A stretch of 64,000 nucleotides of DNA from Macrostomum hystrix (lineage: Eukaryota > Animalia > Platyhelminthes). The stretch spans positions 8,060,001 to 8,124,000 of the forward strand of contig CATNEN010000039.1 in NCBI GenBank assembly GCA_950097015.1. The letters are read 5' to 3'. Under the pieces are notes generated by a model. The model saw only the letters and a program-made list of their open reading frames with translations. It did no database searches and was not told the DNA's origin. Position 1 is the first letter of the stretch. The number at the start of each line of letters is the position of its first letter. Below, one piece after another: positions 1,150-9,365 of this stretch. The position numbers were made by a program, and so were the translations under genes.

Positions 1150-4100
1150 CTTCGAGCATCCCGTGAACCAGACGGTGGCCAAGAAGGTCATCGACCAGGC
1201 TCAGGCAACTTCCGGCATCACAGCCGGTGCAGAAACTTGGCGCAGTGAGTCATTTTGTTAGAGAACAAATCATATAAGAGTTTGAAATATTTTTACTCGT
1301 AAACTGTGCCATAATATTCAAACTTATGAGAGAATATTTAGCTTTGCTCTTACTGAAATAAGAATCTAAATGCTTATTGATACTCAGAAATCAGTGTGAT
1401 TAGTTTTTTCGCTTTTTACATTACTTGTTCTACTAAGTAAGCTCAGTAGCCAGATGCTCATCTCAGCAGAATGGTATGCAATTAAGTGATAAAATAGCGT
1501 TGCAGAGGTTTACAGAGAACAATGGGTGAAAGTGTTTGCAAGTCTGCCAGTTGAACAAAAGCACTATTGAGCCGGTTCAAGGGTCTATGTATAATTCCTT
1601 GTTTGTATTTATTGTCCTGTAATTTTTTGTTAAACTCTAAAGTTGTTCCGCAGTTCTCCCAACTAAAGCTTCTGTTTATATTCAAGCTCATTATTTATCT
1701 ATTGATTGAGGGGGGGCAGACTTAATTTCAAAAATGCGCCTTATAGGCGCCAACAATTTTCAATTCTATGCATTAATCAGCCAAATCAATTTAGCGAATC
1801 AATTATCTTGTTTTGGTCCATAAAATTATGAACAGAGGTCGCAATATTGCAAGTCCTTTGGACAATAATAAACATGTCGAATTTTGATTGGGCTACTGCT
1901 ACTACTGCTAGTAGAAATGAAAGGTTTAACGCTACGAAGAAAAACGGGTCGCATCGAGTAGTTGAACTGTTAATAATACATTTTTCCAGCCGTGCTGGGA
2001 TCTGTCTACGCGCAGTACAGACAGCCAGTGCTGTCCAATCGTAGAAATGTGGCCAAGTTTTACAGGCGCACAATGGTAAGTGTCTTGCTCGACTGCAACT
2101 TCTGGTCGGACGGAAAATTTGTGTTTAATTTTAATTGTCCTTTTGCACTTTAGTTGGCCCCACATCCTAATTGAGTAGATGTTGCTGAGTCTAAGCTGGG
2201 ACTCTAAGATGTAGACTTCTGCCAATGCTATGTATTATAGCCAGATTGTTTGTAAGGAATTCATTAAATGGAACTTGATGACAATTCCTATCATAATATA
2301 TTCCTAGCTGTATGCCTACATGAGTTCCGCAACATGCAGCAGGCTAGCCTGCGGGCCAGGCCTATTTGGCGAAAGAGTAACAGACAGAAGGCTGTGAGTT
2401 AGCTGCATGTGTGACCTCTTGTTGCTGTGTGTATACTTGTAGTTACTGTTCGTTACTGTCCCAGGTGACAGACAGTATTTTATATGATATGGCTGTCCCA
2501 GGTGACAGACAGTATTTGATATGCTATACCTGTCCCAGGTGACAGACAGTGTTTTATATGCTATACCTGTCCCAGGTGACAGACAGTATTTTATATGATA
2601 TGGCTGTCCCAGGTGACAGACAGTATTCGATATGCTATACCTGTCCCAGGTGACACAGGTATTTGATATGCTATTCCTGTCCCAGGTGACAGACATTATT
2701 TGATATGATATTAGCTGTCCCAGGTGACAGACAGTATTTGATATGCTATACCTGTCCCAGGTGACAGACAGTATTTGATATGCTATACCTGTCCCAGGTG
2801 ACAGACAGTATTTGATATGCTATACCTGTCCCAGGTGACAGACAGTATTTGATATGATATGGCTGTCCCAGGTGACAGACAGTATTTTATATGCTGTACC
2901 TGTCCCAGGTGACAGACAGTATTTGATATGATATGGCTGTCCCAGGTGACAGACAGTATTTGATATGATATAGCTGTCCCAGGTGACAGACAGTATTTGA
3001 TATGATATAGCTGTCCCAGGTGACAGACAGTATTTGATATGCTATACCTGTCCCAGGTGACAGACAGTATTTGATATGATATAGCTGTCCCAGGTGACAG
3101 ACAGTATTTGATATGCTATACCTGTCCCAGGTGACACAGGTATTTGATATGCTATTCCTGTCCCAGGTGACAGGCAGTATTTGATATGCTATACCTGTCC
3201 CAGGTGACAGACAGTATTTGATATGCTATACCTGTCCCAGGTGACAGACAGTATTTGATATGATATTAGCTGTCCCAGGTGACAGACAGTATTTGATATG
3301 ATATAGCTGTCTCAGGTGACAGACAGTATTTGATATGCTATACCTGTCCCAGGTGACAGGCAGTATTTGATATGCTATACCTGTCCCAGGTGACAGACAG
3401 TATTTGATATGCTATACCTGTCCCAGGTGACAGACAGTATTTGATATGCTATACCTGTCCCAGGTGACAGGCAGTATTTGATATGCTATTCCTGTCCCAG
3501 GTGACAGACAGTATTTGATATGCTATACCTGTCCTTGGTGACAGGCAGTATTTGATATGATATACCTGTCCCAGTTGACAGACAGTATTTCATACAATTT
3601 TATCCGCTTAGTTGACTATGGCTTAAAATTAAATGTTATATTATAGATGTTTTTGTAACCTCTTCAACGCATATTATTATGTATTGTAAAGTTTTACTCT
3701 GTCAATTAGCCTTGTTATTTTTCCTCACCTGTCCACAATTAAGGCGTTTTACTGAAGTGGTTTGTGGCCCAAAGTATTAGCATGGAGAGACACAGGAAAA
3801 GTGCCAAACGGTCCAAGCGTTGGAAGACAGTAAGGATAGAGTATGTATGCCAAATTAAATTAACAATAAATCAAACACGTTAATACCTCGCGGTTTCACT
3901 GTGTGAGCCTCTACAACGCAATTTTAGTTATCTGGGCAATAAATTAAGCTGACAGGTTTGAAAACTAATTAACTGCCTTTATTCTCACAGAACGGCTAAC
4001 AACTTGGTTCAATTCGCAGAGCACTATAATGATTAGAAATCGTAAAAGTGCCAAAAAGTCGTCCCGTTTGCGAAATGTGAGCTCTTGCCTACTGAAAGTA

Positions 4101-6915
4101 GCGTTGTTCGCGTTTTCTCTTAAAATGCTGCAATAAAAATCGGCTGACACTGCGGAACCTCTTGCTAGTGAACTTTGATTTGTGTAGCAGATTCGTTCCA
4201 ATAAAAAGAATAATAATAATAACTCACCCAGGCAGCCTTCTCACCTGGTTCACGGCTGAGGGACTTAACATTATAAAGCATCGGAAGAGTGCCAAGAAGT
4301 CATTTAGATGGAAGTCTGTAAGCCCGCAATCTGCAAAGTAGACCTCTGTAACCTAATCATATTTTGTTTCGGGCGAGTTTTAACAGTAACAAATGGCTTA
4401 AAAATATTGTCTCTCAATTATAAATGTTTGTACTTTTAGCCTCTGTTGAGTACTTTTTCATCCGGTTGAGCAATGTGATAATGTCGAATCGGCGCAGCGC
4501 CAAGAAATTTAATCGAATGCGCATGGTTAGTATCTATGCTACTGCTGTAAGTAGTAGCATTAATTTTGGCGATGCTCATTTCCGGTAATGTTCTCTAACA
4601 AAGACCTCTGTAACTAAATGAACTTAGTGTGACAAGTATTTTCTACAAACCTACTAGCTGAATATGTTTGTTGCACTTTTAGCCTATGTGGAGTGCTTTT
4701 ACAGGCGATTGGCTCATATAATCCTGTACAATCGCCGAACAGCCAGAAAGTCGGCCCGCCTACGCATGGTTAGTTTCAGCTTGGGCCTTAATGTATATAA
4801 GATATGCTTGGTGGTCTTTGTTGCAGTTTTATGAAAAGAAAACATTTTTCTACTCTGTCAATCTCTGCCAAATTCGATTAGCCCTAGTCTAGAAGAAGAA
4901 TTTTTTTATGAATTTCCTGATAAAAAAACTAAATTAAGCAACTCGCGACAACATGAAACTTGCATTCGACCTGGAAAAGAAGTCAGTGCTGGATAGTAGA
5001 AAGCGGGCTGGTCGATCTAATCGGATGAAGTCGGTAAATATTGTGCCATCTTAAATACGAATTTTAGAAGCGATGCTTCACTCCAGTGTACATTCTTCCT
5101 TCCCGGACTGCCCTCCACGTACACCACACTGGCTCCTGTGCTAACCCCTATCCCCTCACACCCCAGTGTACATTCTTCCTTCCCCGACACAAAACAGCCA
5201 AACCCCTATCCCCTCACACCCCAGTGTACATTCTTCCTTCCCCGACACAAAACAGCCAAACCCCTATCCCCTCACACCCCAGTGTACATTCTTCCTTCCC
5301 CGACACAAAACAGCCAAACCCCTATCCCCTCACCCCAGTGTACATTCTTCCTTCCCCGACACAAAACAGCCAAACCCCTATCCCCTCACACCCCAGTGTA
5401 CATTCTTCCTTCCCCGACACAAAACAGCCAAACCCCTATCCCCTCACACCCCAGTGTACATTCTTCCTTCCTCGACACAAAACAGCCAAACCCCTATCCC
5501 CTCACACCCCAGTGTACATTCTTCCTTCCCCGACACAAAACAGCCAAAACCCTATCCCCTCACACCCCAGTGTACATTATTACTTCCCGGCATCATTATT
5601 TTAACTCTTGTTTGCCCTGTTCGCTGCAACAATTTTTTCCAGCTATTTTGTTTGCGGTCAGAGTTGTTTATATTAGTTTGGGATTTTTAGTAAAACAAGC
5701 CGATCTTGCAAACATTATTTCTAATGGAAACTTACGAGAAACTCGTATCTTTAGGAAATGATATCAAATTTTCATGTTCGAAATTCAACTCTTCCAGTTA
5801 CCATTGGCAAATACTTTTCTCACGAACTGAAATGGATCCTTGTGCGCAGAAAGTCTGCAGCCAAGAGTTCCAGATTGAAACGGGTAAGATTCAATAGATC
5901 AATGCCGCTTTTCAGCAAAGCAAATCGGATTCCACCGACTTTAGCAAAAATGGTTTTGGTTCGTTGAGTTCCTGATTCATTGAAATCCTGGATCTTTGAA
6001 TTCTTGATTCCCTGAAGTACAAATTCATTGAAATCCCAATTCATCGAAATCCCAATTCCATAACATCCCAATTTATCGAAATCCCAATTCCTTAAATTCC
6101 CAATTCATCGAACTACCAATCGAAATCCAAATCATTAAAATCCCCAGTCCTTAAAATCCCAATTCATCGAAATCCCAATTCCTTAAAATCCCAATTCATC
6201 AAAATCCCAATTCCATAAAATCCCAATTTATCGAAATCCCAATTCCTTAAAATCCCAATTCATCGAAATCCCAATTCCTTAAAATCCCAATTCATCAAAA
6301 TCCCAATTCCATAAAATCCCAATTCATTGAAATTTCTATTCCCAACCTCCCGGCTTTTTTATTGCCTAAACCAACGAACCAGTAACCGGAAACCAATAGA
6401 TGGACCGCTGAAACACCACGTCGAAGCTAGTTCTTTTTTGTGCATTAAAAATAAAATTTAATTCGCTATTTCAACGAATATTTAGAAACATTTCCTGAAT
6501 TTGGCACTGCAGTAGTATGCGTCGAGTGTTTCTAGACCGTAAACAACGAGAGTTTTTTCAATAAAATATCCATCTCAAACAGAAGCTCAGCCGGCGTCAG
6601 AAGGCTTTCGAGACTCTGTTGCCGAATCTGTCGCCGGACGATCTTGAGCAGTATCGCATTGTGCTAACCAGAGATTTGACCTCGTCAGACGAGGAGGAAG
6701 AGGACGAGACCCTCCGAGTCCGCTGCCTGGCCTGGGAGTCGGCCCGGGTGCGAGACATCAAGCGCAACCTGGACGAAGCTTTCATGCGGCGATTCGCCAC
6801 CGTCAAACAGCGGGCCCAGCTAAGCAAGTGCGTCCGCGACGACTCCGTTAGAAGTCAACGACCCATTCCGCCTGGCACGCCTGAGTGGGTCATTGGGTCG
6901 GCCTTTCTGCCCTGA
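1150..6915 (+). CDS. 3' part of a C14orf93-like gene: constitutive exon 1150-1244, one of nine alternative exons, terminal exon 6583-6915 (5' end lies upstream of the window)
   Basis: Exon 1150-1244 (ttgcag|...|gtgagt) reads FEHPVNQTVAKKVIDQAQATSGITAGAETWR and ends in phase 1. Exon 6583-6915 (aaacag|AAG, phase 0) reads KLSRRQKAF...LTSSDEEEE...RVRCLAWES...LD...SQRPIPPGTPEW*. The motif layout resembles the C-terminal domain of C14orf93 as recalled from memory, not searched. Confidence 0.75.
1251..1473 (+). promoter_or_regulatory. Putative LCR-like intronic RNA structure (basal stem plus internal hairpins)
   Basis: CATTTTGTTAGAGA (1251-1264) pairs with TCTCAGCAGAATG (1461-1473). Internal stems at 1271-1291/1313-1328 and TTACTT/AAGTAA (1421-1440). 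Confidence 0.55.
1494..1521 (+). promoter_or_regulatory. Putative splicing docking site ATAGCGTTGCAGAGGTTTACAGAGAACA
   Basis: Its reverse complement recurs, with G-U-compatible changes, ~65-85 nt upstream of cassettes B-H and weakly upstream of cassette I. Confidence 0.75.
1990..2075 (+). CDS. Alternative cassette exon A (86 nt): (T)VLGSVYAQYRQPVLSNRRNVAKFYRRTM
   Basis: ttccag|...|gtaagt; phase 1 to phase 0; open frame. Confidence 0.85.
2308..2393 (+). CDS. Alternative cassette exon B (86 nt): (T)VCLHEFRNMQQASLRARPIWRKSNRQKA
   Basis: tcctag|...|gtgagt; phase 1 to 0; open frame; selector at 2210-2231. Confidence 0.82.
2456..3593. repeat. 37-bp minisatellite CTGTCCCAGGTGACAGACAGTATTTGATATGCTATAC
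   Basis: About 30 tandem copies between cassettes B and C. Confidence 0.97.
3744..3829 (+). CDS. Alternative cassette exon C (86 nt): (S)VLLKWFVAQSISMERHRKSAKRSKRWKT
   Basis: attaag|...|gtaagg; open frame; selector at 3654-3670. Confidence 0.85.
3991..4076 (+). CDS. Alternative cassette exon D (86 nt): (K)RLTTWFNSQSTIMIRNRKSAKKSSRLRN
   Basis: tcacag|...|gtgagc; open frame; selector at 3902-3926. Confidence 0.88.
4232..4317 (+). CDS. Alternative cassette exon E (86 nt): (S)SLLTWFTAEGLNIIKHRKSAKKSFRWKS
   Basis: acccag|...|gtaagc; open frame; selector at about 4154-4165. Confidence 0.88.
4440..4525 (+). CDS. Alternative cassette exon F (86 nt): (T)SVEYFFIRLSNVIMSNRRSAKKFNRMRM
   Basis: ttttag|...|gttagt; open frame; selector at 4338-4355. 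Confidence 0.88.
4683..4768 (+). CDS. Alternative cassette exon G (86 nt): (T)YVECFYRRLAHIILYNRRTARKSARLRM
   Basis: ttttag|...|gttagt; open frame; clear paralogue of F; selector at 4589-4614. Confidence 0.88.
4939..5033 (+). CDS. Alternative cassette exon H (95 nt): (T)TRDNMKLAFDLEKKSVLDSRKRAGRSNRMKS
   Basis: attaag|...|gtaaat; same phases as the other cassettes but 3 codons longer; selector at 4853-4868. Confidence 0.72.
5082..5580. repeat. 58-bp minisatellite (CCCCAGTGTACATTCTTCCTTCCCCGACACAAAACAGCC...)
   Basis: About 8 tandem copies; source of the three overlapping repetitive ORFs at 5086-5761. Confidence 0.95.
5798..5883 (+). CDS. Alternative cassette exon I (86 nt): (I)TIGKYFSHELKWILVRRKSAAKSSRLKR
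   Basis: ttccag|...|gtaaga; open frame. Confidence 0.87.
5970..6345. repeat. Degenerate AAATCCCAATTC-type tandem repeat
   Basis: Visible tandem array in the last intron. Confidence 0.9.
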
Positions 6916-9365
6916 CCTAATCATTCACTCGGGTTATTGTTATGGTTTGATCTTGCAGATCTATCGGAAGTAGGAAGAATCAATGCCTGTGGGTCTTTGT
7001 ACAACATCTGTCATATATTTAGCAATGTCACCAAATCTCAATCAAAACTGCAATGTAATTACTCTGACTTTAATCGTCTCTCAAATCCTTATCAATCTCC
7101 CAAATCCTTACCCATCTTCTCAAATGATTATCCTTCTCCCATAATCCTTGTCCATCTCCCAAGATCCTGTGTTAGGTAAATAAATTTTGTGATGAATATG
7201 TATATGCCAGCCTAACACAAGTTTACATAAGTTCAATCTAGCTCATTGTTCAACAACGTTATGTACTTTTGCTCTTTAAAGTGAATCACATTGAGACTAT
7301 TTTTCATAAGTACGAGTTTACTTTGACTTCATGCATGACTCACTTTGTAGCCTGTCAACTGGCGTTTTGCAATTGTTCTTTCTGCTGCATTTTATACTAA
7401 AAGTACTTTCTTAGCATTCGTGTTTTTATAAATGTTACCATGCTTACGGTCCATTAACCAATGTACTTCTGAGCTTGCACCTGCTCTCTCGTTCTGCATC
7501 TCTCCTATTCTCTCCCATTTAATTATTTAGTTTCAATGATATACGAGCTAAAATTAATTTGACTGGAAATCTATGCTAAATAAACATTGACATCGTTGTT
7601 CAGTTTGGTTTTAACATGCTTGCGTGTAATTGTTTTACATATTTGTTATTTGTGTGTTACTATCCGCAGCCAGAATTTATCGCCTATATAAGCGTAGGCA
7701 TGATTTTCGAAACTAAAAATACACAGTTTAATACTAGCTGACTTGTATTTGTCTTTATTAATGACAGCTTAAATTAGCAGTGCAAAATTATCATTGATAA
7801 TCAATCATGCTAGTGTTTGTTTCTACATTTAATTTTTACGTTATGACTATCCGTTCAATATTGGATTTAGTTCATATCGGTATCCTAATAACGTATTAAT
7901 ACTTACAATCGTAATATACGTGAACGATAGTTGTGAATAAATGCTTTAAAATGTTTGCCAGATGGCTAAACTAAATTTAGTATAATAGACTAGCAATTTG
8001 AACCCCCTCAATTTTTCTTTTAATTCTCGACATTTTCTGCGGTCTAAGCGTCTGTATCCACTTGTTTTGTTTGGGACTTGTCGACCCCAGATACAAATTG
8101 AACAGCAAATTTATCTGGGGTTAAAAGATTCATTTAATTGAGGAAGTGCCCCAGTCTACGGACTGAACAGCAGCTGTATGCAGCGCTATAGCTGCCACTG
8201 TCCGGCCCAACTGGCTAGGTGTACTTGCTATTACCTATATTCTCTTTCATCAACCATATTTCCGATCCCAATACCTATTCCTAGCCATTAAACGTACAGG
8301 AAAAACTATATTATAAATCATATTTGGGAAATTGATTTGTAAGTGGAAATGATTAAGGTATATTGAACTGATATTTAAAATTATCCATATCAATCAAAGC
8401 ACAGGTACATATTCATAAATTCATCATACGTTGGTGCCAAATTTTGCTATTTTATCGGGTTATCTACCAATAATGTAAACCAATGAGCAAATCTTTACGA
8501 CGGTATTACAAATCAAACAAAGTCCAACCTCGTGACGAAACAATCCGACGACAGGGGCGTTCAATCAAAATCACATTTTGCAGGTTGCGGCACGCAAATG
8601 TACGAATTTTCCACTATCGCTGGCCTAGAGTTATTGAATATTTGATTGATTTGCCATAAAATGCATCGACTGACTGACTCAGGTGGAGAAATTGTGGTGT
8701 ATTAAGATATCTAACCCCCGCGCAATTGTCTTATTTTGGCCATCAGCTCCCGCAGCTGATCAGTTATTCGGAATCAATTTTCATTGCCTGACTAAAGAAT
8801 GGCAGCTGAGACCCGATCAGCATCAGGACCGACTGGGGAATTTGAAGAAAATAACGACCAAAAATGAGCGATAGCGACATTATTTGCTGCGGGTGGAGGG
8901 CACGCCAAGTGTCTGCAAAACCAAACGGGCCTCATTAGCAATTTATCAGCAATTGGAGATGGCATGACATCAGCCTGGTAGCTGCCTGATTATGCCATTT
9001 TCAACGCAAGGCCGAATGGCGCAAGTGATAACCGTACGTCCTTCTCAAAATCGCGTGACGATTCGCCCAGCCTCCAAAGTCTTGGCCCCGTCATCAGAGC
9101 AAACCTGCGCCAGCTCCATGTAGCTTGATCTGCTCGCGACTAGACCCGACTCCTTGCTGTCGAATTGAGATATTTTAATGCGTGGCCCCATCAACCCAGC
9201 CGCGGATCGCTTCTTTGGGATTTAGGGATTTGGTGCTCCTGGGATCTGGGCTCAATATAAATAAGAGAATAGGCGGGTCGCCAAATCCGCCGCATCGCTC
9301 GCCTAAGAAGCAGCTCTCCAAGCAGCCACTCGCCAAAGCCAGTTTCTCACCGATTAGCCGCAAAG

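Follow-up and report, generated by a model that had tools for sequence, protein, structure and literature searches.

The window, a stretch of 64,000 nucleotides (nt) from the flatworm Macrostomum hystrix (C39:8060001-8124000), contains near its start an array of nine interchangeable cassette exons (A to I) between two constant exons, all on the plus strand, and in the first intron of this array a candidate docking site with complementary selector sequences ahead of most of the cassettes. The exons were delimited by open frames and splice-site bounds, by contigs from public RNA runs (labelled X1, X3 and so on) and by comparison with P0001, the gene model of the ortholog in Macrostomum lignano. 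They are as follows:

1150-1244, plus strand: upstream constant exon, 95 nt, ending in phase 1, with donor GTGAGT at 1245; RNA contigs start or stop exactly there, and tblastn against P0001 was used
1990-2075, plus strand: cassette A, 86 nt; exon bounds, and an RNA junction from 1244 to 1990 (GT..AG) in runs X1 and X3
2308-2393, plus strand: cassette B, 86 nt; open frame, AG/GT bounds; P0001 has a B-type cassette
3744-3829, plus strand: cassette C, 86 nt; open frame, AG/GT bounds
3991-4076, plus strand: cassette D, 86 nt; open frame, AG/GT bounds
4232-4317, plus strand: cassette E, 86 nt; open frame, AG/GT bounds
4440-4525, plus strand: cassette F, 86 nt; open frame, AG/GT bounds
4683-4768, plus strand: cassette G, 86 nt; open frame, AG/GT bounds
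4939-5033, plus strand: cassette H, 95 nt; poor polypyrimidine tract
5798-5883, plus strand: cassette I, 86 nt; an RNA contig of X3 passes from 1244 into 86 letters starting with the sequence from 5798 on
6583-6915, plus strand: downstream constant (last) exon including the stop codon, starting in phase 0; translation 91% identical to the C-terminus of P0001

Cassettes thus come in two lengths, 86 nt for eight of the nine and 95 nt for H, which is possibly decaying; all nine are of the form 3n+2, are flanked by AG and GT, and encode a segment with a basic tail of the type R-K/R-S-A-K-K-x-x-R-x-K. Because every cassette is 3n+2, an mRNA with zero or two of them would be out of frame. The introns between cassettes measure at least 122 nt, so that steric hindrance would not explain an exclusive use of cassettes. 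Loose contig ends before 1150 carry the preceding exon, whose translation ends in ...GPHLFDFAKP, and no convincing dead cassette was found in the first intron. Four large tandem repeats lie in the introns of the gene: one at 1-1115 with 29-nt units, one between B and C (2456-3594) with 37-nt units that hold a short inverted repeat (CTGTC...GACAG), one between H and I (5143-5588) with 58-nt units, and one in the last intron (6013-6333) with 32-nt units.

A search of 1.84 billion representative proteins with the last exon gave 63 relatives. Of those that are full-length, the 14 best-scoring ones looked up are all 'hypothetical' proteins of M. lignano, the top one 91% identical, and ten weaker matches include two proteins from oysters and some unnamed metagenome sequences besides more from M. 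lignano. A separate homolog search with the last exon gave no match within the length range that it covers. Pfam has no family for the exons in the window or for six full-length M. lignano relatives, and neither immunoglobulin (Ig) nor fibronectin type III (FN3) domains were found in them. For PF15394 (C14orf93 / DUF4616) in particular there was no hmmscan match at E <= 0.1; a protein-atlas look-alike with DUF4616, at a feature score of 0.89, is a lead only. Judged by its sequence the gene is uncharacterised, lineage-restricted and not Dscam, in agreement with the initial annotation of this stretch, which had placed it in a non-Dscam gene of a non-arthropod: no Pfam domain is present, the clear relatives are M. 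lignano hypothetical proteins only, and the best of them are from a flatworm.

Evidence on cassette use comes from RNA and from gene models. The RNA consists of Logan contigs from four public runs of one study, which were placed on 1140-2470 only, given the 37-nt tandem repeat in the cluster. Spliced contigs in X1 and X3 join the constant exon to cassette A, and a separate contig in X3 runs from 1244 directly into the 86 letters that open as cassette I; since both junctions occur in X3, the first and the last cassettes are each joined straight to the constant exon in one sample. Intron depth lies below exon depth, consistent with pre-mRNA. The M. lignano gene models have one cassette each, and within the pairs P0002/P0067 and P0004/P0074 the flanks are identical and the cassettes differ; these models map to distinct cassettes of two paralogous loci, L030 and L032, described below. 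Together, the 3n+2 lengths and the one-cassette models point to one cassette per mRNA, and this exclusivity may extend over the whole cluster. One M. lignano model, P0006 (575 residues), runs through two L032-type cassettes in series plus the intervening sequence, and is probably a mis-annotation due to the cassette array.

The docking site lies 244 nt past the 5′ splice site of the upstream constant exon. In a blind, ungapped scan for 14-mer complementarity over the whole variable region, the position at 1499 ranked first of about 5300, and, with up to 3 mismatches allowed, the docking 23-mer has no second occurrence in the 42 contigs of the 220-Mb genome. For the energies of pairing, a duplex scan over the entire region 1530-6580 was abandoned for its poor nulls, because the intronic tandem repeats often match any G/U-rich probe. 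Instead, RNAduplex was applied to the docking site (1488-1524) against fixed windows of 80-170 nt upstream of each acceptor, and each energy is given below with the number of dinucleotide shuffles of the docking site, out of 400, that reach it.

1488-1524, plus strand: docking site; core 1498-1514, GTTGCAGAGGTTTACAG
1886-1935, plus strand: best duplex for cassette A, gapped; -21.1 kcal/mol, 21/400; no convincing selector
2199-2237, plus strand: selector B; -31.4 kcal/mol, 1/400; four G-U pairs, the antisense duplex reaching just -17.4
3647-3681, plus strand: selector C; -27.8 kcal/mol, 1/400
3898-3927, plus strand: selector D; -33.4 kcal/mol, 0/400
4154-4165, plus strand: candidate degenerate selector E, GGAACCTCTTGC; best energy for E -20.4 kcal/mol, 168/400; core hexamer at the usual position, 75 nt before the acceptor
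4338-4369, plus strand: selector F; -27.1 to -27.3 kcal/mol, 0/400
4588-4615, plus strand: selector G, a two-part helix with a 5-nt bulge; -29.2 kcal/mol, 0/400
4852-4890, plus strand: selector H, weaker; -22.8 kcal/mol, 11/400; 13 of 16 bases match the docking-site complement
5607-5653, plus strand: selector I, core GTTCGCTGCAACAATTTTTT; -26.1 kcal/mol, 3/400; 145-191 nt before the acceptor, farther than the others

Summed over the nine cassettes, the duplex energy is -223.6 kcal/mol against a shuffle mean of -131.9 (standard deviation, SD, 9.9), about 9 SD beyond shuffled docking sites; none of 500 shuffles reaches it, nor do natural 37-mers from the same window, with the exception of one in 1198. 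Complementarity above chance is clear for five selectors (B, C, D, F and G) and likely for two more (I and H); A and E do not exceed chance in energy. The elements span 49-110 nt upstream of the acceptors, I being apart, and five of the seven [AG]CCTCT hexamers in 1525-6582 sit 75-98 nt before a cassette acceptor. When the upstream introns are multiply aligned, the selector block is their sole conserved part.

These results bear out much of the initial annotation. The docking and selector strings that it quoted do occur where it placed them, and its expectation that the docking site would pair better than shuffled controls holds. That selectors precede the cassettes stands for five of them, B, C, D, F and G, whose duplexes of -27 to -33 kcal/mol are each reached by no more than 1/400 shuffles, and more weakly for H, and fails for E on energy; the selector it proposed for I at 5702-5720 is unsupported, the site at 5607-5653 being better. 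It had put the selectors about 65-85 nt upstream of the acceptors, where the side is right and the true span wider. Its remark that cassette A has only a weak match agrees with the gapped duplex listed above.

It had also claimed a single docking core that can pair with one selector at a time. All strong duplexes indeed include docking positions 1498-1514, and because they occupy this one core the selector pairings are mutually exclusive. This geometry bears on one alternative, namely that the pairings are real and selected for some other purpose, such as shortening a long, repeat-laden intron or back-splicing, with no choice of one among many. The large tandem repeats within the introns (2456-3594 and 5143-5588) would suit such a role, as would the fact that, among contigs on 1140-2470, junctions were seen for A and I only. 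A single docking core facing many selectors, however, is a competitive design, and the 3n+2 lengths and one-cassette gene models point to exclusive use, so that we regard this alternative as highly improbable.

Several further elements were considered. Directly 3′ of cassette B and before the 37-nt tandem repeat, at 2409-2428, is a selector-like sequence, TGTGACCTCTTGTTGCTGT, with no cassette within the next 1.3 kb; it may be an orphan selector parted from its exon by expansion of the repeat. Docking-like motifs at 1829-1845 (ACAGAGGTCGC) and 4811-4826 (GGTCTTTGTTGCAG) come out as second-tier in complementarity scans against some cassettes, and may be auxiliary pairings or chance. A second, downstream docking site, as in the bidirectional model, was not found in the window or in four paralogs. 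A fold of 1235-1535 resembling a locus control region ('LCR-like') was considered and rejected, its stability being no greater than that of shuffles (z = 0.27).

Within the same genome there are 26 matches to the last exon, and we examined the 10 kb upstream of 19 of these. Seven loci with more than one cassette are listed here, with the result of an RNAduplex test against 200 shuffles for four of them:

L034, C8:1409600-1419550: 7 cassettes of 77-95 nt, own docking/selector set; z = -7.8, 0/200 shuffles
L035, C12:352500-362450: at least 12 cassettes of 77 nt, own docking/selector set; z = -5.9, 0/200 shuffles
L036, C2:6196200-6206150: 7 cassettes of 77 nt, own docking/selector set; z = -7.0, 0/200 shuffles
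L046, C34:7400200-7410000: 4 cassettes of 77 nt, own docking/selector set; z = -3.5, 0/200 shuffles
L032, C8:1716900-1726800, minus strand: 2 cassettes, own docking/selector set
L030, C32:1771900-1781800, minus strand: 3 cassettes, no clear docking site
L038, C2:6188200-6198150: about 5 cassettes, no clear docking site

In each of the five clusters to which the blind 14-mer scan was applied (the window gene and four others), the highest-scoring position falls within the first intron; as first introns make up 11-18% of the scanned variable regions, the joint chance of this is about 7e-5. L032 has selectors for both of its cassettes (-29.4 and -26.2 kcal/mol). Across the six clusters with a docking site, its distance from the constant 5′ splice site varies from 83 to 840 nt. 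In L031 and L033, paralogs with a single cassette, the first intron measures just about 50-80 nt and would leave no room for the docking/selector spacings seen elsewhere. Family members often stand as tandem pairs or triplets (on contigs C39, C32, C2, C12, C7 and C34), and about 10 kb before the start of the window lies the last exon of a neighbouring paralog, 48% identical (L003:815-1276, that is C39:8050815-8051276).

The docking sites of these clusters are of two types. Type 1, with the core CGTTGCAGAGGT, is kept in the window gene, L034 and L032, and type 2, TCTGGAAACGTCGCAAGT, is an 18-mer that L035, L036 and L046 share letter for letter; for either type, the introns around the site are unalignable. 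An origin of the docking sequences from a transposon or repeat was rejected, since neither type is a genome-wide repeat, and exact copies of the type 2 18-mer occur at its three loci only in the whole genome. A second alternative has to be weighed against this pattern: the selector might be a motif to which a splicing factor binds, acting as an intronic enhancer before each 3′ splice site, with its complementarity to the docking site incidental or a decoy. The fairly fixed distance between element and acceptor is what one would see for a protein-bound enhancer. Such a motif, on the other hand, gives no reason to expect one reverse-complementary copy in each of six first introns, two wholly different motif types each with its own complement, an extension of the helix past the shared core in a cluster-specific manner, or a bias toward G-U pairs, and we think it very unlikely to account for the data.

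The fit between docking sites and selectors was compared by swapping them among clusters, using every cassette, unselected, and energies per cassette. For type 1 docking sites the energy is -25 to -28 kcal/mol with the selectors of their own cluster, -20 to -22 when the selectors come from another type 1 cluster, and -14 to -20, the background, when they come from type 2. Among the type 2 clusters, a docking site does about as well with one set of selectors as with another, which is expected because these clusters share their core. In L034 a stray CCTCTGC at position 8563 led to an 86-nt cassette (8683-8768) that the exon filter had overlooked. Conservation and co-divergence of docking sites and selectors are thus seen between paralogs of one genome.

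For the pattern of substitution, 32 selectors from the six clusters were pooled, and each was aligned to the perfect complement of its own docking site. Transitions that preserve pairing as G-U (A>G and C>T) number 46 and pair-breaking ones (G>A and T>C) 8, with 457 and 371 opportunities, respectively (binomial p = 2.8e-6); the same alignments contain 103 transversions, mainly in the flanks. Strand-symmetric mutation is no predictor of such a bias. The excess of wobble-preserving changes to which the initial annotation had drawn attention is therefore real, in a count that pools the six clusters. Sense duplexes are also stronger than antisense ones in 32 of 39 pairs, a comparison that we set aside as a test for selection at the RNA level, being weakly informative after control for composition.

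A third alternative is that the complementarity is a neutral by-product of array growth, in which each exon, on tandem duplication, took with it a copy of one arm of an ancestral intronic stem-loop, as modelled by Ivanov and Pervouchine, and descent has kept it with no present role in choice. Selectors within a cluster are homologous copies, the published model (PMC6071210) predicts exactly such a layout from duplication, and the selectors of A, E and H are decayed or missing, all of which would agree with this. It does not sit well with the retention of docking cores and selectors where introns are otherwise unalignable within and between clusters, with matched sets kept in paralogs at just 50-66% protein identity, with the best fit of each type 1 docking site to its own selectors, or with substitutions running 46 to 8 toward those that preserve G-U pairs. 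The model accounts for selectors multiplying with cassettes and is one of origin, not of maintenance; taken together, conservation, a fit specific to each cluster and the bias toward G-U pairs point to continued selection. We consider a purely neutral origin unlikely.

The explanation that we favour, and hold to be very probable, is a docking-site/selector system in which competing RNA pairings direct the choice of one cassette from nine. On the pre-mRNA, the docking site at 1488-1524 would pair with one selector at a time through the shared core, each selector lying about 50-190 nt before the 3′ splice site of a cassette. Pairing would loop out the intervening cassettes and bring the chosen 3′ splice site near to the constant 5′ splice site, so that this cassette is spliced in, and the 3n+2 lengths would penalise transcripts with zero or two cassettes, backing a one-cassette rule. 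The proximal cassette A may be a default when no pairing forms, which fits both its missing selector and its detected junction. That pairing would be the cause of exon choice, and that cassettes downstream of the chosen one would be skipped, is proposed by analogy with exon 6 of Dscam1. In Dscam1 exon 6 itself, the skipping of downstream variants after the choice was long unexplained.

A number of observations weigh against this explanation. The only cassettes for which junctions were seen among the contigs on 1140-2470, A and I, are those whose selectors are weakest or most atypical; cassette E is without energetic support and that for H is modest. In the multi-cassette paralogs L030 and L038 no clear candidate for a docking site emerged from the regions scanned; these genes may use another mechanism or have a site beyond those regions. 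The advantage of sense over antisense duplexes, -3.76 kcal/mol, is about half due to composition, with a shuffled baseline of -1.89 and a range of -3.35 to -0.68 over 20 shuffle sets. Finally, the likeness among selectors of one cluster is partly inherited through tandem duplication, and for this reason our argument rests on the comparisons between clusters and on the substitution bias.

The known system nearest to this one is exon 6 of Drosophila Dscam1, for which the docking/selector model was put forward (Graveley; summarised in PMC6071210 and PMC7797038). The initial annotation had likened the array to it, and the layouts do correspond: in both, the docking site lies in the intron directly after the upstream constant exon, selectors before the variable exons compete for the same docking nucleotides, and the variable exons are tandem duplicates that share one length (eight of nine in the window gene). 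Dscam1 exon 6 has 48 variants, whereas the window gene has nine cassettes and is an unrelated gene from the flatworm phylum, with no Ig, FN3 or Pfam family. Its layout is common to a paralogous family with two docking types, neither an hrp36-like repressor nor a locus control region was identified, and the role of the pairing is a prediction from sequence.

Competing intronic pairings for mutually exclusive exons have also been described in insect genes other than Dscam, namely 14-3-3 zeta, Mhc, MRP1 and srp (PMC6071210, PMC4691838). In the arthropod genes 14-3-3 zeta, Mhc and MRP1 the docking site is downstream of the cluster (PMC6071210), unlike that of the window gene, which is upstream. 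In human ATE1, competing R1-R3 and R3-R4 pairings control the mutually exclusive exons 7a and 7b (PMC7797038). Though ATE1 is, like the window gene, from a non-arthropod, it has two exons and an ultra-long-range module, compared to one docking site facing 7-9 selectors in the window gene and at least 12 cassettes in L035. The large arrays described until now with one docking site and many selectors are from arthropod genes; outside that group the example found was ATE1, with its two exons (PMC6071210, PMC7797038). In the library searched, no paper connects selector sequences, mutually exclusive exons or Dscam with Macrostomum or with flatworms. The array is a new and apparently convergent case of docking and selectors, notable for lying outside the arthropods, for its many exons per docking site and for belonging to a co-diverged family of paralogs; we infer an origin independent of that in arthropods.

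If this is true, a flatworm would have a Dscam-like system for isoform diversity, and an independent multi-exon case of this sort would show that the RNA-pairing solution arises repeatedly upon tandem exon duplication. The co-diverged docking/selector sets of the paralogs amount to natural compensatory variation, with which one could test how the strength, distance and geometry of pairing set exon choice. For the family as a whole, we find it rather likely that a docking/selector system specific to Macrostomum evolved independently of the arthropods and was inherited by at least six paralogs with at least two docking types, in which each gene may select a single variant, out of 2 to 13 or more, for a short basic segment beside a conserved C-terminal domain. 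The function of these proteins seems to depend on that swappable basic segment of 25-31 residues.

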